DNA from: Hyaloraphidium curvatum SAG 235-1
Taxonomy: Eukaryota; Fungi; Monoblepharomycota
Length of the DNA: 64,000 nucleotides
Assembly (NCBI GenBank): GCA_025558095.1
Contig: JAIVFI010000027.1
Span: 544,177-608,176, forward strand
Reading direction: 5' to 3'
The notes beneath the pieces are model-generated. The model searched no databases. It saw only the letters and a program-made list of their open reading frames with translations, and had not been told where the DNA came from. The translations under genes and the position numbers were made by a program. Below, one piece after another: positions 1,400 to 47,040 of the stretch (position 1 is the first letter of the stretch; the number at the start of each line of letters is the position of its first letter).

Positions 1400-2558
1400 C
1401 GCCGATTGCCCGCTGATACGGCGCCACCCGACTTTCAACGACCTCCGCGCCGCCGAGCCGCTGGACAAACGCCGGTTCCTCCGCGCTCTGGCGCCGTGGC
1501 CGTCGTTGAGGCGCCTGGTGGCCGTGCGTATCGCCGCGTTCCCCGCCGTGCGCGGGTCGTTGTCGGCGAGCTGCGTGCTAATCTGCACCGCGAACGCGGC
1601 CTGCGGGGCGTCCCTCTTCTACCTCAACGACGGCCGCTTCTCCACCGGCCGTGTGATCGGCGTCCTCGTTGCCCAGTGGACCTTCCTGCTGCTGACGATG
1701 GTGAGCGTCGTCCAGAGGGTGGACTCAGTCTACGACGGCTTCGCGCCGCTGGTCCTCGCCGGCGACGACAACACCTTCGCGGGCTTTGCGCGATGGAGCG
1801 AGCTGCTAGCTGCGGCCGACCGCAGCAAGGAGGGGGGCGCCCTGGTGGAACACGTGGCTGCGGATGGGCAATGCCCGTGCGCGCTACCCTCTTGCGCGGG
1901 GAACCTGCCCGGCAAAGCGACGAGGTTCGCCGTCGTCTCGCAAGGAATCATTTCCTTTGCCGGCGGGATGAATTGGGTTTTCTTGTGCTACACGGCGATC
2001 GTTACTTTCGGGCCGTCCCTGTGGACTTCCGCCTGGGCCGTCGCTGGCGCAGCCTACTGCGCAATGGTCGTGCTCTTCTACCCCCTATTCACGATGCAGG
2101 CACAGCCTGTGCTCCTCGCCCTCGAGCGCGGGCCGGCAAAGGGCATCCCGCTTGGCCTCGCGGTGGGCTTCAAGTCGCTCTTCACCAAGCCGTTCGCGGG
2201 CGCGCTGGACTGCGTGTACCAGCTCGCCAAGGGGTGCAAGCACGACATGCGGTACCTCTTTGCGCCGGCGTCGGAAAGGAGGAGGCGCGCGGCGGCGAAG
2301 GTGCCCGGGGGCGTCGGGGACGCGGCGGGCGAGGACGGCGCGGGGCTGACGCCCGAGGAGGAGGAAACCGTCGTGAGACGGTTTCTGGAGTTCAGGGACT
2401 CGGATACGTGGACGGTGGGCGAGGTCATCCGCGCCGAGGCGCAGGAGGAGGCGGAGGAGACGGCGGGATTCGAGGCCGGGAGGGAGGCCGGCAGAGCCGC
2501 GAGGAGCCTGGTCTGGGATGCCAAACTGGCGCAGAAGCAGTTCAAGAATGCAGCATAG
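1400..2558 (+). CDS. Chimeric ORF: N-terminal half of the multi-TM family fused to an unrelated tail resembling the VPS13/ATG2 C-terminal helix
   Basis: Family motifs LNDGRF, FARWSELL, CPCALPSCAG and YTAIVTFGPSLW run to about 2130, then KGIPLGLAVGFKSLFTKPFAGALDCVYQLAKG follows. The true start is uncertain; the ORF is open from 894. Confidence 0.5.
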
Positions 2559-2824
2559 CTAATTGTATCGTCCAGGGTCGATCACGCATCGCGAGATCCG
2601 CCAATCGAGGCCAACCTCTTAGGTGGCAAGACCGTGCAGTTGCCGCTCGTCTGCGTACGCTGGAACAGCGCACCCTAAAGCGAACGAGACCGCGCCATTA
2701 AGCAGGCGCAGGCCCCGGGCAACGCGCCCGATAGGAGATCCGCAAACTCCCACGTACCGTCGTCGCGTCGGCAGACCCGCGACCCGACAAGCAAACATCG
2801 GTTCGAGGGTTTCGTGCCAACTCG

Positions 2825-3955
2825 ATGGCATCCCAGCCCCTCCCCACGTCTGAGGCACCCCATTCCACCCCCCGAGAGGTCCTCTTCATCGGCACCGGCG
2901 GCACCCTTGCCTCCTTCGCCCCCTCTCCCCTCCAGCTCCACGACTACGAATCCTCCCTGCTCCCTTCGTCTGCGCTCGTCGCGCGCTTCACCTCGCTGTC
3001 CCTGCTCCCGGGCGTCGCGGTAGTGCCGATCGACGTGCCACCGCTGATTTCGGACGCGATTGGCCCGCGGGAATGGAGTTCCTTGTGCCGCAAACTGTCC
3101 GACGCGCGCGCGGGGCACCCCGACGCGGCGGGTATGGTCGTGGGGCACGGGACGGCGACGATGGAGGAAACCGCGTACCTCTTGGATCTCTTGGTGGACA
3201 ATGCCGGCTGGGGCACGGTGGTGCTGACGGGCGCGATGCTGCCGGCTTCGGCGGCGGGGGGCGACGCGGAGGGGAACATCCTTGCAGCGTGCACGGTGGC
3301 TGCCGACCCGCGATCCGAGGGCAGGGGGGTGTTGGTGGTCATGTACGGGGAGGTGCATGCCGCGCGGGACGTTTCGAAGACGTCGGCCGAGGGGAGGGGG
3401 GCGTTCAAGTCGCCCGGCAAGGGGCCTCTCGGCCTGGTCGACGCCAGGGGCGTCGATTACTTCCGACGAGCCGAGCCCAGGCCTTCCTTCGGATTCCTAC
3501 CAGCTCTGCTGGACAGCTGGCCGCGGGTCGACGTGAGCTACGCGTACGCGGGCTGCGACGGCACCGCCGTGCGCGCGTTCGTCGCCGCCGGGGCCAGGGG
3601 CATAGTGTCCGCGGGTTTCGCGCCGGGCGGCACGTCCCCCGCCGAGGAAGAAGCCCTGGACGAGGCTGCAAATGCGGGTGTTATCGTGGTGCAGTCCACA
3701 CGGACAGGCGGCGGACGGGTCGTCCCGACGAGGCGGATGGCAGAGCGAGGGTGGATCCCGGCGGGCGACCAGCCGCCATGCAAGGCGAGAGTGTTGTTGG
3801 CGATGGCGTTGGTGGCAGCAAAGTCGCACGACGAGGTATCGGGGATGTTCGCCACGGCAGGACGGGGACCGCGGATCGCGCGTGGCGACAATCCGGGCAG
3901 ACCGGCGGAGCAATGGGACGACGGCTTCCCCCGGAGCTCGGATGTCCCGCGATAG
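2825..3955 (+). CDS. L-asparaginase/glutaminase family enzyme, intronless
   Basis: Motifs FIGTGGTLAS, HGTATMEET (HGTDT variant), VLTGAM, SKT, PRVDVSYAYAG, GIVSAGFAPG and KARVLL. Confidence 0.93.
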   Translation: MASQPLPTSEAPHSTPREVLFIGTGGTLASFAPSPLQLHDYESSLLPSSALVARFTSLSLLPGVAVVPIDVPPLISDAIGPREWSSLCRKLSDARAGHPDAAGMVVGHGTATMEETAYLLDLLVDNAGWGTVVLTGAMLPASAAGGDAEGNILAACTVAADPRSEGRGVLVVMYGEVHAARDVSKTSAEGRGAFKSPGKGPLGLVDARGVDYFRRAEPRPSFGFLPALLDSWPRVDVSYAYAGCDGTAVRAFVAAGARGIVSAGFAPGGTSPAEEEALDEAANAGVIVVQSTRTGGGRVVPTRRMAERGWIPAGDQPPCKARVLLAMALVAAKSHDEVSGMFATAGRGPRIARGDNPGRPAEQWDDGFPRSSDVPR

Positions 3956-5627: not shown

Positions 5628-7208
5628 ATGCGCCGCCTGAGGGGGCTGCTCGCGGCGATACTGGCAGGTGCCCCAATTATTGGAGCCGCAACGATCGTGC
5701 TGGGGCGGATGCGGGCGCCGGACGTCCCCCCGGGGGAGCCCGGCGGGGGGTCCGCCGGCCTGCCGATGCTGCGCGCGTGGGCGCCCCACCCGCCGTGCGT
5801 GCGGCCTATCGCGCTGGCGAACGTGTGCATAGGCGCGGCCGGCTCGGCATCGCGGCCGCGGACGGTGTTTCCGGCGGCCGGGTCGCCGCCGGCGTGGGCG
5901 GCCCCGGACGTACGCGCCGCGCTGGGCGGCCTGCGGAACCCGTCGTTCGCGCAGTTCTGCAGCGACCTGGGCGAGCACAACCCACTCGGCCTTTTCTTCG
6001 AGTTCGGCAGCCCGCCGCCGCCCGGCTCCTCCCCTCCGCCCGGGATCCTGCCGGCACTCGCCGTCGCCCAGGCCTCGGCGCTGCAGAACACGTTCCATGC
6101 GGTGCACGCCGCGATCGCACTGCACCGCACCGTGCGCAGCCATTTCCCCGAGGTGCGACTCCCCGCAGACCCCGCCGACCTGCGCGTGCATCTGCTGAAC
6201 CGCGCAGACCATTCCCTGCGGAACACCTGGTTCCGCCACATGAGCTTCCTATTTTCGGCCGTGGCCCGCGACCCCGGCAGGAACATCCTCGTCGACGAGG
6301 CTTCGCCGTTCAACAGGTCTGCGGGCATCGACCGGTACGTCCCGCCCGACGTGCCAGACGCCCCGGCCTGTTTCGCCCACTCCGTGTGGGGACTCTACCC
6401 GACCATGCGGCATCATAACCAATACTTTCCCTCCGACTTTGTCGCGTACCGCAACGCGATGCTGGTGGAGCACTACCGCGGGCTGGTCTTTGGCGAGGGA
6501 CCGTTCCCCGCGGAGCCATTCCCCGACGGCCGAGCCGTTCTGCACCCTTCCCTGCGCAGGCCCTTCCGCCCTCTCCCTGGACCCCCGCCCTCCCTCCCGT
6601 CAGGGACCGTTTTCGAACCGCCCCCCGGGTCCCCACTCTCCCCGCCCTTCCGATACCCGTGCCACCCGAGTCTGATACCCCTCACCCTCCTCCTCCGCAA
6701 CCCCCTCAACCCCGACCGCAACCTCACCAACCCGCACGACGCTCTGCGCTGGATCTCGGAGCTCAACCCGGCCCTTGAGCAGCGATACGGCGCCCGCGTC
6801 GTGCCCGCTCTTGCCTCGTTCGACCCCCCCTTCCCCCCGGACCGGCAGCTCCTCACCGCCTTCCGCTCGCGCATCTTCGCCGGTGTCCACGGCGCCGGCC
6901 TCTCCTGGGGCCTCTTCCTCCCGCCGGGCTCGGTGCTCCTCGAGATCACCGTGCCGTGGATGATGCGGCACCAGCTCCCCGGGTGGGAATTCGGCAAGCC
7001 GGTGGAGGGGTTCAGCGGCAACGGGAGCGAGGGGATGTGGTTCGCCCAGTTTGCCGCTGCGGTGGGGGCGGCGCATTACAGGACGAGGATGTACGCGGGG
7101 GCGGGCGGGAGCGTGACGCTGGAGAGGGCGGATTGGGAGGAGGCGGTGGACAAGGCGGTGGAGTACGTGGTGAGGGAGAGCAAGGGCACGTGTTCTCTGG
7201 ACCGTTGA
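5628..7208 (+). CDS. Glycosyltransferase family 61 (DUF563)-like type II membrane protein
   Basis: N-terminal TM anchor (LLAAILAGAPIIGAATIVL) and the GT61 signature AGVHGAGLSWGLFLPPGSVLLEI. Confidence 0.8.
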   Translation: MRRLRGLLAAILAGAPIIGAATIVLGRMRAPDVPPGEPGGGSAGLPMLRAWAPHPPCVRPIALANVCIGAAGSASRPRTVFPAAGSPPAWAAPDVRAALGGLRNPSFAQFCSDLGEHNPLGLFFEFGSPPPPGSSPPPGILPALAVAQASALQNTFHAVHAAIALHRTVRSHFPEVRLPADPADLRVHLLNRADHSLRNTWFRHMSFLFSAVARDPGRNILVDEASPFNRSAGIDRYVPPDVPDAPACFAHSVWGLYPTMRHHNQYFPSDFVAYRNAMLVEHYRGLVFGEGPFPAEPFPDGRAVLHPSLRRPFRPLPGPPPSLPSGTVFEPPPGSPLSPPFRYPCHPSLIPLTLLLRNPLNPDRNLTNPHDALRWISELNPALEQRYGARVVPALASFDPPFPPDRQLLTAFRSRIFAGVHGAGLSWGLFLPPGSVLLEITVPWMMRHQLPGWEFGKPVEGFSGNGSEGMWFAQFAAAVGAAHYRTRMYAGAGGSVTLERADWEEAVDKAVEYVVRESKGTCSLDR

Positions 7209-37996: not shown

Positions 37997-39926
37997 CTAA
38001 ACATCGCCCCCGGCCCTCCCCTCCCGCCCGCTGATCCCGCTCCCCGTCTCCCTCAATTCGGTCCCCTCCTCGCTGTACGGCACCAGCAGCGCGCTCCCCG
38101 AATGGCTCGCGAACGAGGCGCGGGGTTCTTCCGAGAGAACGGAGGGGGAGAACGAAGGGCGGGGGTCGGAGGGTGCGGAGGAGGCGGCGGGGACGACGCC
38201 GGAGGGGGCGGCGGTGGTCCGGCGCCAGGGGAGCAGGCGCAGCCGGGGTGGGGAGGGCGCGGGAGCGGGGGGCGTCGGCGGGGTGGTGGGTGTCGGCGGG
38301 GTGGCGGGGCGTTCCGGGGTGGTCGGGGAAGGAGGCTCGGTGCCGACCGTTGCTTCGGCCGCCGCCGGCGCGGACGGTGCGGCCGTGGCACCGGCCGCCG
38401 CCGCCTCCGCTTCCCTCCGCCGCCGCCGCCGTCTCCTCCGCCTGCGCTCGCCCTCTTCGGGAGGTCCCTCGGTGACACCCCTCACGCAAAGGGGACACCT
38501 CCCCGCGACGCCGAGCCACTCGTCCACGCACGCGCGGTGGAAGTGGTGCCCGCACGGCAGGCGCCGCAGGACGTCGCCAGGCTCGTAGGACGACAGGCAG
38601 ATGACGCACGTGGCGTCTTCGGGTTCGAGCTCCAGGTCGGGTGGGGGTTTGGGGGCGCGGGAGGTGAGCGTGGGGAGGCGCAGGCGCCGGGTCGACGGGG
38701 TGGCGGGGGGTGTGGCTGCCGTTCCGCGCTCGAGGTCACGCTCGGCGGAGGACGAGTTCCGAGGGTTGGTGCCCGGCTTGGGCACGAACGTCCGCAGCTC
38801 CAGCGTCCGCAGCACGTCGTCCCCCACCCCCCTCCCGCCCTGCCCCGCCGCGTCCCCGACCCTGAGCCAGCGCATCCCCACGAGCACGCAGGGAAGGCAG
38901 AACACCACGGCGCCGCACAGCACCACGGGCACGGTGATTACCGCGTAGCCGAACACGACGAGGGCGAGGGACGTGTAGTAGACGGCGGGGGAGGTCTCGG
39001 AGCAGGTGGTGGAGGTGAAGAGCCACCAGTTGCCGATGACGAACCAGAGCGTGGCGAACAGGTCGAGCGCGGACTTGCCCCTGCGCGCGAGCGAAGCGAG
39101 GGAGTGCAACGGGGGGCGGAGAAAGGCAGGCGGCGACAAGTTAGCAAAGAAGGGCAGCCATCGGACTTGCAACGCCCCACCTATCGACCCAACCGCCGAT
39201 CCACCTCTCGCGCTCCCTGTCCGCCTCGCTCAGCCCCTCCCTCCCCCTCGCCGGATGGGTCATCCGCCACGCCACCAGCGGGCTCACCGCGGTGACCCTC
39301 ACGACGTGCAGCACGATGAACAGCCGCAAAGGGGAATCGCACTGCTGCCCGGCCGACACGGCGAGCACGGCCACGCAGGCGGCGAACTGCGCCACGGTGA
39401 GCGACATGGAGAGCACCAGGAGCGAGATGGAGGAGGGCGAGAGGCGCGCGGGGAAGAGGAAGCGGAAGAAGTTGAGGCGTGCGGTGCGGGCGGCGTGGGG
39501 CGGCAGGTGGGGTGCCGCAGCCGCGCCCTCGTCGTCGTCCTCCTCGTCCTCCGAGACGTCCGAATCGTCGGTGCCGGAGAATGTGTCGGTGTCGGAGGCG
39601 CCCCCGGCTTGGGGAGGGCTGCCCGGCGGCGGGGCGTCGGGGTCCGCCGCCGCTGTGCCCCCTTCCCAAGCCGCGGCCGCCGCGCTCCCCGCCCCCGCCG
39701 CCGCGTTCCCCGCGCTGTCCGCATTGTGCCCAGCCCCGGCCGCCCCGCCCGCGGCTTCCGCACGGTCCGCCGGCTTCCCCTCTTGCGTCGCCGCGCGCCC
39801 CGCTTCCCCCGCGCCCGCCAAACCTCCCCGCCCCGCCCCGCCGCCGCCGTCCATTCGCACGACCACCACATCGGCCGCATCGTCCGACGGCGCCGATGCG
39901 GACGCCGCGGGTGTGGGGGACGCCAT
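37997..39926 (-). CDS. Transmembrane RING-H2 E3 ubiquitin ligase, intron(s) near 39110-39250
   Basis: [32 protein letters not shown]...CPLC; TM region with [20 protein letters not shown] and FCLPC. Confidence 0.9.
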
Positions 39927-40003
39927 GCCGCCGCCTGGCCGACGCGGTGCCCTGTGCCGCAGGCTCTCTGAGACTGGAGCGGGGGCGCGAGAATTTACCC
40001 GGA

Positions 40004-42142
40004 ATGGACCCCCCTGACACAGGGCAGGGGCCCAATGATGCGGCCGCTCCCGTGGTCCTGCCTGATGGCAAGGTCTCCCCTGCGCTCGCCGCGGCCTCCT
40101 CGGAGGCGCTTGCGAATCCCGTCCACTCTTCCCACGCTCCCGGCGTCGCTGCCTCTCCTCGCCTCCCTGGCGCGGCAGAGGAGCCCGCGCCGGCCCCCGC
40201 TGGTGCTACGGCTCAGCTGACAGGTTCTAAGGAGGACGCTGCTGAATCGACCACTGAAATCCGCCCCGCGTCCGCCAACGGCGGCGCCCGGGAGGAGCCG
40301 GCTCCGCAGAATCGTCTCCCGAAAGCAACCGCCCCCGCCACGCGCCTGGGGTCTCGCTCTTTCGCCGCAGCAACGTCGCGCACCTCGCCCGACCGCCCGA
40401 TTGTTCGTGTCACGGACGGCGCGATGGCGGAGCATCTGGCTTCTGCCATGCCTTTCTCGGCGCCCACCAACTACGCCAAGCTCATCGATCGGGTGCAACC
40501 GCACGCCAACGGTCGGGGCTACACGCCGGCCTTCATTGGGCCTGTCCCCCACTGCCTCATCGACCTCAACGGTGTGCCAAAGGACCGACGGCGCGTCGTC
40601 GCCGAAGCCGTGGCGAAGGCGACCTTCCCCACCACCGTCTTCACGACCGAGACGCGAGGCTACAACCCGCGTTACTCGCGACTGGACCTCTTCTGTGTTG
40701 TTGGTGCTGTCGACGGGGCAGACGCTATCAACGCCTTGGTGGAGCAGGGGGTGCTGGAGGTCAAGTTCCCAAACGGCCCGACGCGTCGGCTGCGCATCCA
40801 CCCTGTCTTCAAGGACACGCACGCCGAGCTCAAGATCGGGCCCATGATCGTCCCTGGTTCGGTGCACGAGTGCCCGGACTGGTGGGCCCGCCTCTACGCG
40901 ACTTTCCAGAACCACTATGGGGCCCCTTGCCAAGTCATTGAAGCGGCTCCCATCTCGGGCACCGACAGCAACGCCTTCTGGCGGGTCACTTTCGACGTCT
41001 CGCAGTGCGGGGTTGATGCCTTCTTTGACCGTGCAGCACGCATTGGCCCACCCTCGTACTGCTTCCTTGACTCGTGGGGGACACTCCTCCAGCACAAGCT
41101 CCTTCGCCCAGCTGTCCGCTATGACAGTAGCAACGGACAGTGCGGCCACTGCAAGCGCACGGGCGGCCACGTCGGTGACGATGCCACGTGCACCAACTGT
41201 GCTTACTGCCCAGACGGTCTCAACCGCATGAATCCCGGCGCCTTTGCCAGCCCGCAAGCACGCCGTGCGCACGAGGCGGACTGCATTCACAACCCGGCCA
41301 ACGTACGGCTCTCTCCCCCAACGGTGGAGCCCGCCACGACCCCGCGGCTGCCCCCCCTGAGGGAAGAGGTCGTTCCTCCGCATCTGGCTTCCCCCACCGC
41401 CCCTGCGGCCAACGAGTGGCTTACAGCTGGGCCGTCCGGCAAGCGCGCAGGCTCTGCGCCCCCAGCTCTTGCCCAGCCAGTGGCCAAGGCGTCCCACAAC
41501 AGGTTTTCGGCACTCGGTGGTGGTGGTGCCGGTGCTTCGGTCGATTGGGGGGAGTCTGACGCCGCCGAAAAGATGGATTTCCATGGTCTTCCCATTTTAG
41601 AGCCGGCTGACAAGGATGGGGACGAGGACATGGGTGGTGCCGACCAGCTGGCCGCTGAGAACGCCATCAGCAGTGCTGCACAGCAGGTTGCAGCCAATAC
41701 CGCGCTGGAGGATCTGGAGCTTGCTGCTCCCGCAATGGAGGGCACGGAATCTGCGATGGAGGAGGATGCCACCGGCTCTGAGGCCTCGGGTGGAAACGAC
41801 GCCGCCTCCGAAGCCTCTGCTGAGGGCGATGGTTCGAACTCGGAGGCACCAAGCGAAGACATGCACACGGCCGATGAGGCCGCTGGGGCATCCGCGGTTG
41901 GTGATCCTACGATGGCCCCAGGCCCCAAGCACGCAGGCAAGGGCCGTCCCGTGGAGGATGTGGCAGGGACAAACCCGGACAAGGTTGCCAAGCCGTATCA
42001 GCAAATCGACGTCAAATCCGCCAAAGCGGAACGGAAGGCCAAGGCGGCCGTTCGCAAGCTCGGCTCCCCCCAGGCCAAGGCCGCCTCCACGTCAACCGGA
42101 TCCCTGCTGCCGGCTCCTGGCTCACCGTCCTTGAATGCCTAA
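40004..42142 (+). CDS. Retrotransposon ORF1, gag-like nucleic-acid-binding protein
   Basis: ATG 13 nt inside the element; SFAAA motif; globular core; CGHCKRTGGHVGDDATC and CAYC...HEADC; NRFSAL; acidic disordered tail. Confidence 0.75.
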   Translation: MDPPDTGQGPNDAAAPVVLPDGKVSPALAAASSEALANPVHSSHAPGVAASPRLPGAAEEPAPAPAGATAQLTGSKEDAAESTTEIRPASANGGAREEPAPQNRLPKATAPATRLGSRSFAAATSRTSPDRPIVRVTDGAMAEHLASAMPFSAPTNYAKLIDRVQPHANGRGYTPAFIGPVPHCLIDLNGVPKDRRRVVAEAVAKATFPTTVFTTETRGYNPRYSRLDLFCVVGAVDGADAINALVEQGVLEVKFPNGPTRRLRIHPVFKDTHAELKIGPMIVPGSVHECPDWWARLYATFQNHYGAPCQVIEAAPISGTDSNAFWRVTFDVSQCGVDAFFDRAARIGPPSYCFLDSWGTLLQHKLLRPAVRYDSSNGQCGHCKRTGGHVGDDATCTNCAYCPDGLNRMNPGAFASPQARRAHEADCIHNPANVRLSPPTVEPATTPRLPPLREEVVPPHLASPTAPAANEWLTAGPSGKRAGSAPPALAQPVAKASHNRFSALGGGGAGASVDWGESDAAEKMDFHGLPILEPADKDGDEDMGGADQLAAENAISSAAQQVAANTALEDLELAAPAMEGTESAMEEDATGSEASGGNDAASEASAEGDGSNSEAPSEDMHTADEAAGASAVGDPTMAPGPKHAGKGRPVEDVAGTNPDKVAKPYQQIDVKSAKAERKAKAAVRKLGSPQAKAASTSTGSLLPAPGSPSLNA

Positions 42143-42986
42143 AACACCACCAAGCAAGTGGCAACGCCGAGTAGTGGGCTGCTCTTCTCGGCGCCGAGCT
42201 CGTCCGGATACCTCCCGGGCGCGGTCAGCCCCTCCATCTTTTGCTGTTTTGCAGTCTTCACCGGTACGCCAACTACCACTATCTACAACGTCTCACCGAG
42301 TTCCGAGGCCGTTCGCGGCAGCAGGGGAGACTTCCGACATTGACCCCGCGTCCCCCGGGGCCCCTCGGCCAAATGCCGTGCCTAGCTTGGCCGAGGGTCA
42401 CACTCTGCCCACGCCGCCCCGCGGCTCCTCCCGCTTGCCGGCACCAGCGGGGGGGAAAGGGGCGGCATGCTCGGAAGTATCTCCCTCCTCGTCATCGCAG
42501 ATCTTGATCGCTGATGCCCCGGCTTCGGCCGCTTCCATGCTCTCGGCGCACCCAGGCCATCCTCCGTGGGAAACCCCAGCTGCAACCGCCGTGCCGAGCT
42601 TGCAGCTGCCGCCTGCGCCGCCCCGCACAACCCCCGGCACGCCGCCGGCACCAACGGCCGGGGGGGGGCAGAGCTCCTCGGAAGTATCCACTCCGACGCG
42701 CACCTTGCCTCCTTGGTATGCTCACACGGAGCCCGGTTCGCCGGCGCACCTCGAATGGCCAGGTTCCGAGCTCCTCGATGACGGCGGCAGTGATGCTATC
42801 GGTGACGCGTGGTCGGCGCTTGCGGCCTGGCACAGGGCGGGGGGCGACCTGACCGAGTCACAGGAGGTTTGGATGCGGACACATGCGCTCGACGATTGGG
42901 AGATCTCGTCGGACAAGGCACCGTCCGCGGTAGCTGATCCTGGCGGCGGGACACCGGCATCGCCGCCGCCACCGTATTCGCCATGA
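42135..42986 (+). CDS. Retrotransposon ORF2, Pro/Ser/Ala-rich orphan with a Trp-rich acidic C-terminal segment
   Basis: 283-aa ORF that exactly bridges ORF1 and ORF3, with overlaps ATGCCTAA (42135-42142) and ATGA (42983-42986). Confidence 0.6.
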   Translation: MPKTPPSKWQRRVVGCSSRRRARPDTSRARSAPPSFAVLQSSPVRQLPLSTTSHRVPRPFAAAGETSDIDPASPGAPRPNAVPSLAEGHTLPTPPRGSSRLPAPAGGKGAACSEVSPSSSSQILIADAPASAASMLSAHPGHPPWETPAATAVPSLQLPPAPPRTTPGTPPAPTAGGGQSSSEVSTPTRTLPPWYAHTEPGSPAHLEWPGSELLDDGGSDAIGDAWSALAAWHRAGGDLTESQEVWMRTHALDDWEISSDKAPSAVADPGGGTPASPPPPYSP

Positions 42987-45900
42987 GCTGCACGCCGCTC
43001 CTGCCTTACAGCTGCCACCGCTGCGCGGCAGCTTTCGCCAACATCGGAGCTCTATCTCATCATCACCAATCTTGCATCGACGGCGATGTGCCGATGGCGG
43101 AGGCGCCTGCTGAACCCGGCCTCCATGCGTGCCCGGTTGATGGTTGCCGCTTCCAGCCAACTCCAAACAAAAACAAACGGGACGGTCATCTTCGGGTCAC
43201 ACGGAGCCCGGAGCACTGGTTGGCGATGCAGCGCCTGTCTGCCGATGCGTTGCGCGCCATGGGGCTAGCGCGGTGCGGGGGTTGCCGGCGTCCCTACGCC
43301 GCAAACGCCTCTGGTGCCGGTGTTTCTGGACAGCACACCTCGTGCAACCCGGACGCAGCTAACCCGCCACTCGGCGTCTCTTTAGCTTCGCTTCCACCCG
43401 ATCTCGTCGAGTTCCTCGACCGCGTGCGTGCCGAGCGGGCGGCTGCCACGGGACGCGCGGAGGGACCGGCGTCACCAGCGGCATCGTCGGCATCTCCCCG
43501 TGCTTCGCCACCCGCGCCCGCGCTGATGGCGGCCCTTGCGGCCGCCCGGGTTGCGGCCGACGCCCCGCAGGACGGCCAGGCGCAACGGGCGGCGCTGGCG
43601 GCGGCGGCGGCGGCGGCGCGTGCCGCCCCGGACGGCGGTGATCCCCCAGGCGGCGACGGCGCGCCGGGCGGCAACGCTGCGGCTGGCGGGCACGGCAACG
43701 GCGGTGATCCGGGCGACCCGGGCGACGGTGGTCCACCCGGGGGTCCCGGGCCTGATCCGCCGCCGGGCGGGGGCGCGGGGGCGCCGCCGCCGGAGCCGCT
43801 GAAGCACCGCTACCGGACCACCACCTGGAGCACGCTCGCCTTCCGGGCCAGCGAGTCTTTCCAACGGGCCTACGAGGACCCGGCGGCACCGGAAACCGAC
43901 CTGCACCGCACTCTCACCGCCTACCTTGCGTTTGGCGGCTACGTCATGTCGGGGGACTACATGTACGAGCAGAACTACTTCGCCGCCCGTCAGGTCAACC
44001 GGGGCGCGCGGCGGGACGGGCTGCGGCCGCTCAACTACCAGCTCTTCAAGTCCATCGTGCTTGCCGCCTTGAAGGGCGCTCCTGGTGCTGCGTCCGCGGC
44101 CCTCTCGGGGGAGGCCGTTCCGGCTGGCTTCACGCCCACGCTTCAGGCGGAACTGGAGGAGCTGTACCCGGGGCCGCGGGAGGGAGAGCCGCTGTGTCGG
44201 CTGTCTCTGCCCCCCAACGCGCCCGCGCCCTGCCCTGCCTACACGGACGCGGCTTTCCTGGAGGACATCTGGGCCCGGTTGCGCCGGAAGAAGGACGGCG
44301 TGGGGGCCGGCATGTCGGGTTTCAGCATGGCCAAACTTTTCATCGTGCACAACTGCGAGAACGACGCGACGCGGCGGAAGCTCCGCCCGCTGGCGGCCAT
44401 GGTGCATGGCGTGTGCACTGGCCGACTCGACACCCCCATGCTCCGGCCGCTCCTCACGGATCAAATCCTCGTCCCTCTGCTCAAGCCGGAGGGGGGGCTC
44501 CGGCCGATTGGCATTATGGAGGGCATCACGCGGCTCGCGGGCTCGTACCTGGCCGTGCGGCACAAGGCTCTTCTGAGGAAGCTCCAACAGCAGGAGGACC
44601 TGGGTCACGGGGTGGACGGGGGCGCGGAGGCGACCGCCCACGCGGTGAACGCGTGGCTGGCGGCCTTCCCCGACCACGTCGTCATGAAGGTCGACTCTAG
44701 GAACGCCTTCAATACGCTGCGCCGCCTCTTCGCGCGCGAGGTGGTCCGCCAGGTGCCTCAGCTTATCCCGTACTACAACCTCGTTTACTCGCGCCCTTCC
44801 CACGCCTACTTCCGCGACCGGCGCTCGGCGGAGCTCCTTTTCCGGATCACCATGTACGAGGGCAACATCCAGGGCGACCCGCTGTCGTCTGCCATCTTCT
44901 CCTGCGCCATGAGCCGCATGCTGCGGCCCATCCGCTCTGGGCACCCCGACTGCCTCATCCTTGGGTACCTCGACGACCTCACCGTGGTCGGGCCGCTGGA
45001 CTCGGTCATGGCCGTCCTGGGAGAGGTGCGTGACGGCCTTTCTTCCCTCGGCATGACCCACCGCCCGGACAAGAGCTACCTGCTTTCGCTCTCGACGAAC
45101 CCGGCCGTGCTGGAGCGGGTGCGCGCGGCCGGTGCGGCCCACAACATCCGCGTCGCTGGCTTCCCGCCTCACGAGGCCGACCCCGAGGTGCATGCCACGG
45201 CGTCGGCCCCGGGCTCGCCTGACTTCGCTCGCTCGTGCGGCCTCAAGGTGGTAGGTGCCCCGGTCGGCACCCCTGCCTATGTGGAGTCGTTCCTCGCGGC
45301 CAAGATCGACTCCATTGCCGCTCTTCTCGATGAAATCGAGCGCGCCGCGCTCGGCTACGCCATGCCGGCCGACATCCCCTCCCTCCAGGGCCTGTACTCC
45401 CTCCTCCGTCTCTGTGTGACCCAGCTCTTCTCGTTTTGGCTCCGCATTCTCCCCCCCTCGGTTACCCAACCCTTTGCTCGACGTCTTGACAACGCGCTTT
45501 TCACCACCTTCTTGCGCTTGCTGGGAGATCGGGCCGAGGATCTGGATCCGCTGTCGGTGGAGGGTCGGACTGTGCGGGAGCAGGTATTCTTGGGTCTGCA
45601 CTACTCGGGGATGGGGCTTCTGTCATCGGAGAAGGTGGCCTCGGCGGCTTACCTGTCTTCACTCAACCTCACGGCGGGCCCCTTGGACGCCATGCTTGGT
45701 CTTCGAACCTCGGCCCGGGGTGTGGGCGTGGAGCACGTGCGGGAACTGGTTCCCGTCATCGAGGCCCTCCGCCCCGCCTTTGAGCGTGTCGAGGATGACA
45801 CGGCCGCAGCGTACGCCGAGGCTGCGCGTGCTGGGCAACCGGTGGGCGCCGCGCCCGCCCGCCGTACGCTCCCTGCGGACGCCAGTTTCTTCGCTCAGCC

Positions 45901-46894
45901 GGTCTGGCACGGCCTGCAGAGCGACCTTACGCGTCTCGAGGACCAGCGCCGCCTCGCGGCTCTGATTGCCTTGCAACCCGACACTTCCGCTGGTCTGGAG
46001 CGCCGCAAGCGGCTCGTCCAGGCGCAGGACGGCCTGTCGGCTTTCCTGACTGCCTCTCCCGCGCTGCTTGCCAACCACATTCGCAACAACTTTTTCCGCT
46101 TACTTGTACGCTTCCGGCTTTGCCTCCCGCTCCTGCACGAGGCCGACTACCCTGGTCTTTCCTTGCCCTGCCGGCGGGGCTGCAAGCGATCGGCCATGTC
46201 GCTGACGGGGGAGCACGCGTTCTCGGGCTGCTATGGCCGGGATCTCTTCAGTCCTGGTCACGACGACATTTGCGCGGCCATCCGCGCGGCGCTTCGCTCC
46301 ATCCCGCTCCTCCGCGTGCACCCCATGCCGCCAAACCTCCTTGCGCATGGCTACGAGACTGTCACCCCGCCCACGCCTGCGGATGCTGGCCGCCTTGGCG
46401 ACATTCTCATCACGCACCGCGAAACCCGGAAACGGTGGTTGCTCGAGATCAAGACCCTCACCTCTATGGCCCATTTGCACACGGGCCTGGTCTTCTCGGT
46501 CCCGGGCCACGCAGTCGAACGGCGGGTCGAGGCCGCCAGGAAGGACTACTCCCGTTTCGTCTTCAACGCCAACTTCTACCCTCTGATCGTGCTTGCTTTT
46601 GATTCGTACAGCGCTGTCTCTGCCACTTTCTCGCGCTTCTCCTCGGAGATGGGGCGCATCCAGTATCCCGGGATCGTCGGCCGCGATGGGCAGCCCGTGG
46701 ACCTCGATGGCCTTTACTCTCGTTTTGTGCGGCGCTTCCGCGAACGGATCGCGGTGGCCTGGGCTCTTGGCGTCGCGGCCCAACTCCAACACTGGCTTCA
46801 GCTGTGCACCGAAGCCGCCGCTGTCAACGCTCCGGCCCCCGCGCCGGTCGCTTTTGGTTTGAATGTAGATGAGGAGCTGATTCTTGGGGCGTAG
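42983..46894 (+). CDS. Retrotransposon ORF3: zinc fingers + reverse transcriptase + CCHC + restriction-like endonuclease
   Basis: N-terminal fingers CHRC..H, CPVDGC..H..H and CGGC..H..C. RT motifs LKPEGGLRPIGI, KVDSRNAFN, QGDPLS, YLDD and VVGAPVG. C-terminal CRRGC-x10-H-x4-C, GHDD, RLGDILI, LEIK and RKDY. Confidence 0.95.
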   Translation: MSCTPLLPYSCHRCAAAFANIGALSHHHQSCIDGDVPMAEAPAEPGLHACPVDGCRFQPTPNKNKRDGHLRVTRSPEHWLAMQRLSADALRAMGLARCGGCRRPYAANASGAGVSGQHTSCNPDAANPPLGVSLASLPPDLVEFLDRVRAERAAATGRAEGPASPAASSASPRASPPAPALMAALAAARVAADAPQDGQAQRAALAAAAAAARAAPDGGDPPGGDGAPGGNAAAGGHGNGGDPGDPGDGGPPGGPGPDPPPGGGAGAPPPEPLKHRYRTTTWSTLAFRASESFQRAYEDPAAPETDLHRTLTAYLAFGGYVMSGDYMYEQNYFAARQVNRGARRDGLRPLNYQLFKSIVLAALKGAPGAASAALSGEAVPAGFTPTLQAELEELYPGPREGEPLCRLSLPPNAPAPCPAYTDAAFLEDIWARLRRKKDGVGAGMSGFSMAKLFIVHNCENDATRRKLRPLAAMVHGVCTGRLDTPMLRPLLTDQILVPLLKPEGGLRPIGIMEGITRLAGSYLAVRHKALLRKLQQQEDLGHGVDGGAEATAHAVNAWLAAFPDHVVMKVDSRNAFNTLRRLFAREVVRQVPQLIPYYNLVYSRPSHAYFRDRRSAELLFRITMYEGNIQGDPLSSAIFSCAMSRMLRPIRSGHPDCLILGYLDDLTVVGPLDSVMAVLGEVRDGLSSLGMTHRPDKSYLLSLSTNPAVLERVRAAGAAHNIRVAGFPPHEADPEVHATASAPGSPDFARSCGLKVVGAPVGTPAYVESFLAAKIDSIAALLDEIERAALGYAMPADIPSLQGLYSLLRLCVTQLFSFWLRILPPSVTQPFARRLDNALFTTFLRLLGDRAEDLDPLSVEGRTVREQVFLGLHYSGMGLLSSEKVASAAYLSSLNLTAGPLDAMLGLRTSARGVGVEHVRELVPVIEALRPAFERVEDDTAAAYAEAARAGQPVGAAPARRTLPADASFFAQPVWHGLQSDLTRLEDQRRLAALIALQPDTSAGLERRKRLVQAQDGLSAFLTASPALLANHIRNNFFRLLVRFRLCLPLLHEADYPGLSLPCRRGCKRSAMSLTGEHAFSGCYGRDLFSPGHDDICAAIRAALRSIPLLRVHPMPPNLLAHGYETVTPPTPADAGRLGDILITHRETRKRWLLEIKTLTSMAHLHTGLVFSVPGHAVERRVEAARKDYSRFVFNANFYPLIVLAFDSYSAVSATFSRFSSEMGRIQYPGIVGRDGQPVDLDGLYSRFVRRFRERIAVAWALGVAAQLQHWLQLCTEAAAVNAPAPAPVAFGLNVDEELILGA

Positions 46895-47040
46895 GGGGAT
46901 TTCTAAGTGTACGGTGGGATTGCTAGCTCCTCATTACACACACGGGGCGCGACCAAGCCCAGTCGAATCGGGCGAGATCGGGCCATCGAAACGTCGAATT
47001 CAAGATCGCACCAGCGGATGGTATCGAACGCAGCTCCCAT

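Follow-up and report, generated by a model that had tools for sequence, protein, structure and literature searches.

The 6953-bp unit at 39991–46943 of the window (64,000 nucleotides of Hyaloraphidium curvatum DNA, analysed as a whole) raises the question of whether it is a real mobile element and, if so, how it chooses its sites and which of its three open reading frames are genes. The unit has the same 9-bp direct repeat, GGGGCGCGA, on either side, read in the sequence at 39982–39990 and 46944–46952 (all features described here lie on the forward strand). It begins with a 13-nt leader, GAATTTACCCGGA (39991–40003), ahead of the ORF1 ATG at 40004, and closes with a 49-nt 3' UTR (46895–46943) ending in (AC)4 at 46936–46943. 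Three tiled, stop-free ORFs occupy the interior: ORF1 (712 aa, 40004–42142), ORF2 (283 aa, 42135–42986) and ORF3 (1303 aa, 42983–46894). This layout, in its length, repeat, leader, (AC)n 3' UTR and three open frames, is the one given by the first-pass annotation, and all of it was found again on re-reading. The element contains no LTRs or terminal inverted repeats; no ribozyme or promoter was identified at its 5' end, and the 3' UTR showed no significant RNA structure (z 0.28) and no Rfam family.

The host genome (31.9 Mb, approximately 68% GC) holds a family of at least 55–70 copies with identities of 94–100%, many of them 5'-truncated. At least 25 long matches are 98.6–100% identical to the element, and its 3'-terminal 21-mer has 71 occurrences when two mismatches are allowed, 55 of them exact. 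We read 23 of the about 70 copies, and the insertion-site counts given below rest on 22 sites. Ten of 23 long copies from the DNA search begin at element positions 1846–3251 and reach the 3' end, while still shorter 3' pieces turn up in a protein search of the genome. Besides the copy at 39991–46943, ten others have TSDs of their own (7–13 bp) that differ in sequence. These individual TSDs, together with the many near-identical copies, show the unit to be a genuine mobile element rather than a chance repeat. The 5' junctions of the copies show extra nucleotides or microhomology, and the (AC)n tail is short, ranging from (AC)2 to (AC)4. Truncations, variable TSDs, variable 5' junctions and the (AC)n tail together bear the hallmarks of target-primed reverse transcription (TPRT).

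All three ORFs are open in seven of the nine full-length copies in hand. The earlier description of the element as recently active is upheld by copies that are 99–100% identical, by these intact full-length members, by the 5' truncations and by the individual TSDs; as read from the copies, the family is young and probably still active. ORF1 and ORF2 always accompany the RT, and the genome search gave no ORF1 separate from it. The leader is not uniform, the family having at least four versions of it.

ORF3 is composed of Cys/His fingers, a low-complexity linker, an RT, a thumb/linker, a CCHC knuckle and a restriction-like endonuclease. Three finger-like Cys/His motifs can be read in the N-terminal translation (43013–43345; C11/C14/H27/C31, C50/C55/H69/H78 and C98/C101/H118/C121); they were not called by Pfam, where zf-C2H2_4 appeared only below threshold (E 0.29). 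The RT core (aa 501–718, 44483–45136) matches Pfam RVT_1 at 8e-10 and includes LRPIGI (aa 506), DSRNAFN (aa 571), QGDPL (aa 630) and YLDD (aa 662), with GAPVG following at aa 758. The knuckle (aa 1063–1083) and the PD-(D/E)XK nuclease, located together at 46169–46582 by motif reading and conservation in relatives, read C-x3-C-x10-H-x4-C and then GHD (1092), RLGD (1137), E-I-K (1155–1157) and a conserved K (1187), so that every ORF3 motif quoted in the first-pass annotation is present. Conservation over 59 relatives reaches 90% or more in the knuckle and nuclease columns C, C, H, C, H, D and K. Neither an Exo_endo_phos (APE) domain nor a Myb domain was found in ORF3 by Pfam.

A profile of the 59 relatives matched R2 proteins at 3.7e-46, compared with 6e-31 for LINE-1 ORF2p, and APE-bearing proteins reached E 1e-11 to 1e-22 under this family profile, as against values of 1e-100 or better. 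The AF2 model of ORF3 (pLDDT 83, pTM 0.87) retrieved R2 complexes (R2Tg, R2Bm, R2Pm TPRT) as its top six Foldseek matches in the PDB, with E 3e-17 to 7e-14 and TM 0.48–0.59 over 1021–1117 alignment columns at 11–15% identity; LINE-1 ORF2p came next, with TM 0.33–0.43. The predicted fold is R2-like overall. Domain matches and motifs identify ORF3 as a LINE-type RT with a C-terminal CCHC knuckle and PD-(D/E)XK nuclease, hence as a member of the RLE (R2-like) supergroup, and the earlier label of an RLE-type non-LTR element agrees with the RVT_1 match, the R2 profile matches and the resemblance of the model to R2 TPRT complexes. Shared substitutions in ORF3 (18 synonymous:9 non-synonymous, against 38:81 among singletons; Fisher p 0.0017) indicate that it is under purifying selection.

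Among known systems, R2 (solved TPRT complexes 8GH6, 9DOU, 9NL2/3) provides both the best profile and the best fold matches for ORF3. The two share the domain order of the enzyme (N-terminal zinc fingers, RT, thumb/linker, CCHC, C-terminal PD-(D/E)XK) and a TPRT-like integration signature with variable 5' junctions. R2, however, is a single-ORF element with a Myb domain, and it inserts at one long target in 28S rDNA. In the Hyaloraphidium element, ORF1 and ORF2 add 3 kb of 5' coding sequence, no Myb domain was detected, and a 6–7-bp target word disperses the copies through unique sequence of many contigs. That a sequence-specific protein chooses the target has been shown for R2, while for the Hyaloraphidium element we infer it. 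Membership in the strict R2 clade is ruled out by the dispersed unrelated sites, the three ORFs and the Pfam result for Myb. NeSL/Utopia/Togen and HERO are RLE elements with one to three N-terminal zinc fingers and diverse, evolvable targets, some lineages being specific for microsatellites and others only weakly specific (Kojima and Jurka 2015, PMC4640811). They resemble our element in being RLE-type with N-terminal zinc fingers, but one protein is described for them and they insert into multicopy RNA genes or microsatellites (PMC4640811), whereas the Hyaloraphidium element would use a short word in unique sequence with a fixed cleavage offset.

Upstream of the enzyme, ORF1 encodes an orphan with Ala/Pro/acidic disordered ends and a folded-looking core at about aa 120–470. 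Its frame is uninterrupted in each of the 14 copies in hand that span it, and the genome search gave 19 full-length stop-free matches, 13 of them within the loci in hand. In each 100-codon window the in-frame codon model leads by 0.2–0.8 nat per codon, GC3 is 0.72 and GC2 0.57, and the shared substitutions (7 synonymous:8 non-synonymous) show no significant selection. Judged by its frame-specific codon statistics, ORF1 is clearly coding. Its translation contains a Cys/His cluster at aa 380–427 (41141–41284) that reads C-x2-C-x5-H-x6-C and then C-x2-C...H-x3-C, a non-canonical, zinc-knuckle-like spacing. Leads from a language-model atlas point to CCHC/ZCCHC3-type clusters (0.86–0.91); Pfam did not detect zf-CCHC in ORF1, and no RRM, coiled coil or canonical C-x2-C-x4-H-x4-C knuckle was recognisable. 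Pfam (even at E 10), two protein-database searches and the PDB returned no homologues, and no match to a LINE ORF1p. LINE-1 and I/Jockey elements also have a non-enzymatic protein ORF ahead of the RT gene, here one with a Cys/His cluster, but differ in their APE endonuclease and their poly(A) or simple tail. A gag-like ORF1 is an idea that comes solely from the language-model leads. As the single-sequence fold model is unusable (pLDDT 40), a lineage-specific accessory protein that binds nucleic acid, perhaps RNA, is a guess.

The insertion sites have a short word in common. Exact CTGAGA occurs within 70 nt upstream and in the same orientation in 15 of the 22 copies, and CTTAGA in two more; with a background of 1e-4 per nt, this enrichment has a binomial p of about 1e-27. 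At the copy under study the motif (39968–39973, context ctCTGAGAc) lies 8 nt upstream of the TSD and is a candidate recognition site of the ORF3 protein. The spacing between motif and TSD is 8–9 nt in nine of the ten copies having both a motif and a clear TSD, and 11 nt in the tenth, while a small 5'-truncated copy (in L012) has a CTGAGG site with 8-nt spacing. In its longer form the word is (Y)TCTGAGA, with the TSD beginning 8–9 nt downstream. Because five of the 22 copies lack the motif, the specificity is a strong preference and not absolute. Motif-directed insertion, which the first-pass annotation had missed, is a new finding for the element and its most distinctive property.

In our best explanation, to which we give a probability of about 0.8, the locus is an intact copy from an RLE (R2-like) non-LTR family that is young, probably still active and inserts in an orientation set by CTGAGA. 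Mechanistically, the three N-terminal Cys/His fingers of ORF3 would read CTGAGA, by analogy with the role of the fingers of R2 in target recognition (PMC12503042). The nuclease would then nick the bottom strand 8–9 nt 3' of the motif, cDNA synthesis, primed by the nick, would begin at the (AC)n end of the element RNA, and the top strand would be cut another 7–13 nt downstream.

The association with CTGAGA could instead have arisen from a repeated host sequence, or from a chromatin or promoter preference followed by post-insertion selection, with no recognition by ORF3. The copies lacking the motif are in keeping with such an origin, as is the placement of the copy at 39991–46943 upstream of a gene in the first-pass annotation. 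An all-against-all BLAST of the 1.5-kb flanks, however, found no similarity among them beyond the motif, and CTGAGA is neither unusually frequent nor rare relative to 6-mers of equal composition. Constant orientation and constant 8–9-nt spacing are, moreover, what is expected of a nuclease placed by a DNA-binding domain, and we regard an origin in host sequence or chromatin as very improbable. Less easily set aside, though unlikely, is that the element belongs to the CRE clade, comprising trypanosomatid (CRE1/2, SLACS, CZAR) and fungal (Cnl1, MoTeR, FoTeR) elements, and has exchanged spliced-leader genes or telomeres for a short motif as its target. A second ORF, placed upstream, is also present in SLACS and CZAR. 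The host is a fungus, and the RLE elements so far described from fungi (Cnl1, MoTeR, FoTeR) have been reported to group with CRE/SLACS (PMC12857005). The CRE group is likewise RLE-type, with a REL pattern of the same general form: the ORF3 motif, C-x3-C-x10-H-x4-C-x8-GHD-x30-E-x11-R(LG)D-x14-E, fits the general outline of the published pattern C[x1-3]C[x7-8]H[x3-4]C[x9-10]RHD/N..E..R/KPD..D/E (PMC12857005). That pattern, however, is common to all RLE clades and not CRE-specific, and ORF3 deviates from it in three details (GHD for RHD, R-LG-D for R/KPD, and a second Cys-His gap of 10 instead of 7–8). No third ORF has been described in the CRE group, and none of the 22 sites lies at a spliced-leader (mini-exon) gene or a telomere repeat (TTAGG in this genome), the targets of that group. 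The closest relatives of ORF3 are unnamed single-ORF elements of algae, protists and metagenomes at about 30% identity (24–33% for metagenome sequences and those of Cymbomonas, Closterium, Diplonema, a tardigrade and Pyropia), and a tree of 116 such unnamed relatives places it, without support, beside P0002, P0004 and P0006.

A further alternative concerns ORF2, which might make the element truly tricistronic, with a functional protein needed for retrotransposition. This Pro/Ser/Ala/Arg-rich frame, which is +1 to both ORF1 and ORF3, exactly spans the interval that separates the two: its start overlaps the ORF1 stop (ATGCCTAA, 42135–42142), its stop overlaps the ORF3 start (ATGA, 42983–42986), and the codon ahead of its ATG is an in-frame TGA. 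It is open in all 18 copies covering it, a frame of this length being open in 1.2% of dinucleotide shuffles, and its last ~80 codons, less low-complexity in look, score best in their own frame. Against a functional protein, other frames score better under the codon model for the first ~200 codons, GC3 (0.65) is below GC2 (0.70), shared substitutions are 1 synonymous:4 non-synonymous, no homologues were found, and the nearest relatives of the element lack ORF2. Open frames also come cheap in this sequence, as the frame of ORF2 meets only seven stops over the 713 codons of ORF1, and 10.7% of real genome windows contain an open frame of its length. We consider a needed ORF2 protein possible, if rather questionable. 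The earlier count of three genes is supported for ORF1, by its codon statistics, but not for ORF2, which gave no coding signal from codon usage, GC3 or purifying selection; with only the open frame and the overlapping start and stop to mark it, its status as a protein gene is doubtful. In our best explanation, ORF2 would be an open bridge, whose ATGCCTAA and ATGA overlaps would hand ribosomes from ORF1 to ORF3 by termination-reinitiation.

The motif-directed mechanism also bears on the re-use of sites. Because the motif would survive upstream of each insertion, the same site would stay open to a second one, giving head-to-tail pairs with the younger copy upstream. In one pair (L016/L025), with 9 bp between its members, identity to the element at 39991–46943 is 99.55% for the upstream copy and 97.8% for the downstream one; contig C1 carries a tandem pair with a spacing of 14–27 nt. 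The leaders vary among the copies as well. Three loci (L002, L003 and L010) have 10–11 nt of GAATTTACCCGGA in common, and the remaining types read ..GAGAGT, ..ACCTCA or ..ACGTCCCTGAGGC(T)A ahead of the ATG. This variation of the 5' leader by sublineage suggests that transcripts start in, or acquire, a few flanking nucleotides.

The element is a 6953-bp unit (window positions 39991 to 46943) bracketed by the direct repeat GGGGCGCGA (39982–39990 and 46944–46952). A 13-nt leader, GAATTTACCCGGA, lies directly before the ATG of ORF1 (40004–42142, 712 aa), which is followed by ORF2 (42135–42986, 283 aa), ORF3 (42983–46894, 1303 aa) and a 3' UTR of 49 nt with (AC)4 at its end. The sequence matches the first-pass annotation in its boundaries, repeat, leader, three ORFs and (AC)n end, and the reverse transcriptase (RT) and nuclease motifs cited there are all found in ORF3. 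The unit has no LTRs or terminal inverted repeats, the ORFs flanking it gave no Pfam match, and this copy differs from the family majority at 5 positions only. The ORF1 frame is also open for 175 codons 5' of the element (39479–40003), as it is upstream of several further copies, giving a total open frame of up to 901 aa; given the 68% GC, this openness is probably due to chance, but it would permit read-through fusion with upstream transcripts.

Hyaloraphidium curvatum is a monoblepharid, an early-diverging fungus, and in its 31.9-Mb assembly (55 contigs, ~68% GC), where the window belongs to contig C27, the copies of the element form one young family. Searching the genome at the DNA level gave 25 long matches with 98.6–100% identity: 9 are essentially full-length, ten are truncated at the 5' end, and some are cut short on the 3' side by another insertion or by the end of a contig. 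The 3'-terminal 21-mer is present at 71 places when up to 2 mismatches are allowed (55 exact). The part of ORF3 spanning the RT and the restriction-like endonuclease (RLE) has 55 genome matches, all with 94–100% identity except for a single old copy (81% identity) that carries stops. Full ORF1 occurs 19 times, never with stops and never below 92% identity; it is found only within this element, so that the independent occurrence of ORF1 envisaged in the first-pass annotation is not seen. The three-ORF organization likewise extends to other copies, with all ORFs intact in 7 of the 9 full-length ones and ORF3 frameshifted in the other 2. For Hyaloraphidium, the family represents a live mutagen with about 60–70 near-identical copies, many of them adjoining genes.

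Two groups of sites stand apart. An identical variant of the 3'-terminal 21-mer, TGGATGGCTAGCTCCTCATTA (2 mismatches), is present at seven sites (C11:547625, C15:267379, C18:721867, C26:281382, C33:128072, C37:207839 and C38:465632, contig and position), which may represent a sister family or a non-autonomous element borrowing the 3' end. On contig C11, three identical 5'-truncated copies (ORF3 aa 481–864, 97% identity) at 513449, 524527 and 535606 are spaced by 11,078–11,079 bp, a regularity that indicates a three-unit tandem segmental duplication containing an old insertion.

ORF3 displays every feature that we tested for the RLE (R2-like) supergroup. Pfam recognizes RVT_1 alone, and a 232-aa gene-model fragment annotated in Hyaloraphidium curvatum is identical to the ORF3 C-terminus. 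An exhaustive HMMER search collected 5079 relatives of the RT, the best non-self match having 30% identity, while a word-indexed protein search with the RT-RLE part gave no match. The closest relatives are unnamed proteins on metagenome contigs of 3–4.5 kb, and the few named by host come from Cymbomonas, Closterium, Diplonema, a tardigrade, a nematomorph and Pyropia. Searched against the PDB, a profile of 59 relatives retrieved R2 proteins (3.7e-46 to 2.4e-31) and LINE-1 ORF2p (~1e-30). With the alignment of these 59 relatives as input, AlphaFold2 produced a confident model of residues 270–1303 with pLDDT 83 and pTM 0.87, whose six best structural neighbours are R2 complexes caught in target-primed reverse transcription (1021–1117 aligned columns, TM 0.48–0.59), followed by LINE-1 ORF2p at lower TM. 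The C-terminal series C-x3-C-x10-H-x4-C, GHD, E, R(LG)D, E-x-K conforms, with small deviations, to the general restriction-like-endonuclease pattern (PMC12857005), and across the relatives the C, C, H, C, H, D and K positions of this region reach a conservation of at least 90%. A substitution found in two or more copies must date from a lineage that was replicating. ORF3 has 18 synonymous and 9 non-synonymous changes of this kind, whereas its singletons stand at 38:81 (Fisher p 0.0017), so that ORF3 is a functional gene and under purifying selection.

In a FastTree phylogeny of 116 RT domains, ORF3 forms a branch of ordinary length beside three metagenomic proteins, without support. The CRE group, to which the first-pass annotation assigned the element, is a candidate placement; its named members target telomere or spliced-leader repeats (PMC12857005), neither of which was found at the insertion site among the readable sites of this family.

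Junctions were compared for 23 oriented copies out of about 70, with 22 evaluable for a motif. The insertions are associated with the word CTGAGA, a new result: it lies shortly upstream of the 5' junction in constant orientation, usually preceded by T or YT. In 15 of the 22 copies the 70 nt upstream include the exact word, and in 2 more CTTAGA, against a background of 1.0e-4 per nucleotide in the far flanks (binomial p ~1e-27). All-against-all BLAST found the 1.5-kb flanks of different copies mutually unrelated apart from the motif, ruling out insertion into a common repeat; what the sites have in common is therefore a short word rather than a piece of repeated host DNA. Some counts hinted that the genome is depleted of the target word: TCTGAGAC is counted 198 times against 476 for its reversed control, and the window has 9 instances of CTGAGA where 27 would be expected. 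Depletion was nevertheless rejected, since CTGAGA is mid-ranked among 180 permutations of the same composition and words containing a stop triplet are rare in general.

The distance from the word to the duplication is nearly constant. Where a copy has both the motif and a clear duplication of its own (n=10), the duplication starts 8–9 nt past the last A of the motif in nine cases and 11 nt past it in one, and a small 5'-truncated copy in locus L012 keeps the same spacing from a CTGAGG word. Because target-primed reverse transcription places the bottom-strand nick where the duplication will begin on its upstream side, the spacing indicates that this nick falls 8–9 nt 3' of the motif, with the second cut 7–13 nt beyond it. 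ORF3 has three Cys/His finger-like motifs at its N-terminus (aa 11–31, 50–78 and 98–121), all below Pfam thresholds, in a region with no match among 274 collected relatives or in the PDB. In R2, target recognition involves the nuclease domain as well as zinc fingers and Myb at the N-terminus (PMC12503042). By analogy, the three fingers of ORF3 would read the 6–7-bp word.

The (AC) tail recurs among copies with 2 to 4 units (one copy begins 11 nt inside the 3' end), and so do individual target-site duplications. A uniform 5' end is not observed: ahead of the ATG, at least four leader versions are found, each common to a subset of copies, namely GAATTTACCCGGA, ..GAGAGT (the older subfamily), ..ACCTCA and ..ACGTCCCTGAGGC(T)A. 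This partition suggests that source copies hand a few flanking nucleotides to their progeny. Between duplication and element, 5' junctions hold 0–31 extra nucleotides, and microhomology with the target is seen in L022 and the small L012 copy. Since the motif is left intact upstream of the insertion, the same site would be usable again. Contig C1 carries two full copies head to tail, 14–27 nt apart, and L016/L025 contains a pair separated by 9 bp, whose upstream member, judged by its identity (99.55% against 97.8%), is the younger. Searches for a 5' HDV-like ribozyme or another Rfam family returned nothing at E ≤1 except two sub-threshold chance matches, and RNA structure at the 3' end was not significant (z-score 0.28).

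Upstream of ORF3, neither ORF1 nor ORF2 has relatives in Pfam (even at E 10), in the PDB or among the 274 collected relatives, and a word-indexed protein search with the ORF1 core gave no match. Those of the closest relatives whose contigs were read consist of one ORF flanked by short untranslated stretches, and no relative has anything similar to ORF1 or ORF2, which makes the 3-kb upstream module lineage-specific. ORF1 is very probably translated, as a codon model trained on ORF3 prefers its frame to both shifted frames in every 100-codon window (0.2–0.8 nat per codon) and its GC3 (0.72) exceeds its GC2 (0.57); its substitutions common to at least two copies (7S:8N) do not make selection demonstrable. 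The ORF1 core (about aa 120–470) contains a non-canonical C-x2-C-x5-H-x6-C cluster at aa 380–427, for which a protein-language-model search suggested CCHC/ZCCHC3-type clusters (0.86–0.91) as a lead only. A single-sequence AF2 model of the core was unusable (pLDDT 40). ORF1 is putatively a gag-like or RNA-binding accessory protein.

For ORF2 as a real gene, the evidence points both ways. It exactly spans the gap between ORF1 and ORF3, its ATG, preceded by an in-frame TGA, overlaps the ORF1 stop (ATGCCTAA), and its own stop overlaps the ORF3 start (ATGA). The frame common to ORF1 and ORF3 holds 9 stops across this interval, ruling out read-through from one to the other, and no slippery heptamer for a frameshift is visible at the junctions. 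Only 1.2% of dinucleotide shuffles leave the ORF2 frame open; however, 10.7% of real 283-codon windows of the genome are open, and the same frame has just 7 stops over the whole of ORF1. Moreover, GC3 (0.65) is below GC2 (0.70), the codon model shows no preference for the frame except in the last ~80 codons, and the substitutions common to at least two copies are 1S:4N. Of the three genes initially proposed, ORF1 is supported by its codon statistics and ORF3 by purifying selection, and ORF2 is a doubtful third. Our reading is that ORF2 stays open and tiled to let ribosomes ending ORF1 reinitiate and travel on to the ORF3 start; its peptide may or may not matter in itself. ORF2 also contains an imperfect direct repeat of 45 nt (42437–42481 and 42644–42688, 73% identical), whose spacing of 207 nt, a multiple of three, indicates that part of ORF2 came from an in-frame duplication.

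RLE-type (R2-like) retrotransposons are usually single-gene and confined to long multicopy targets. In the literature searched, RLE elements are portrayed as having, for the most part, specific targets in repetitive sequences, and Utopia families as coding in general for a single protein (PMC4640811). A limited literature search turned up no published RLE element with three ORFs, and the papers searched contained no substantive link between Hyaloraphidium and retrotransposons. We regard the enzyme as an ordinary R2-like one and its packaging as unusual: ORF1 is an orphan, ORF2 is tiled, the target is a short word and the cleavage offset is fixed. Mechanistically, the lineage would have swapped the usual long multicopy target for a 6–7-bp word read by zinc fingers, with a nuclease cutting at a fixed 8–9-nt offset, as type IIS enzymes do, allowing spread through unique DNA and re-entry at the same site. 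Two orphan upstream ORFs would have been acquired, and all three ORFs would be translated from one RNA via two successive termination-reinitiation events. For the full combination of a finger-read word, a fixed cut offset and tricistronic reinitiation, we tentatively estimate a probability of about 0.3.

R2-like retrotransposons are now under development as gene-insertion tools. The present family is intact and naturally active, and appears to reach a 6–7-bp word and to cut at a fixed distance from it, offering a compact system to study the positioning of a nuclease by zinc fingers and the evolution of target specificity. It also indicates that the supergroup can carry an ORF1-type accessory gene, perhaps with a coupled third ORF, which bears on the origin of the two-gene LINE architecture.

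Other mobile DNA accompanies the family. A second element, with terminus TGCGAAGGTACAGGACGTCTGACATTCGG, is inserted in three copies at element positions 6112, 5960 and 2075 (L012:7601–9100, L013 downstream of element position 5960, and L016:1–1500); over 1500 bp these inserts share 100% identity, and the second element, ~7 kb by coordinates, is probably of the LTR type and very young. A relative of it, 72–83% similar, is the insertion site of copy L006. The TTAGG repeat type is best known from arthropods and is unexpected in a fungus, yet the window ends (63880–64000) in a telomere-like array of TTAGG pentamers after one TTAGGG unit, and a gypsy-like ORF reaches directly to this array.
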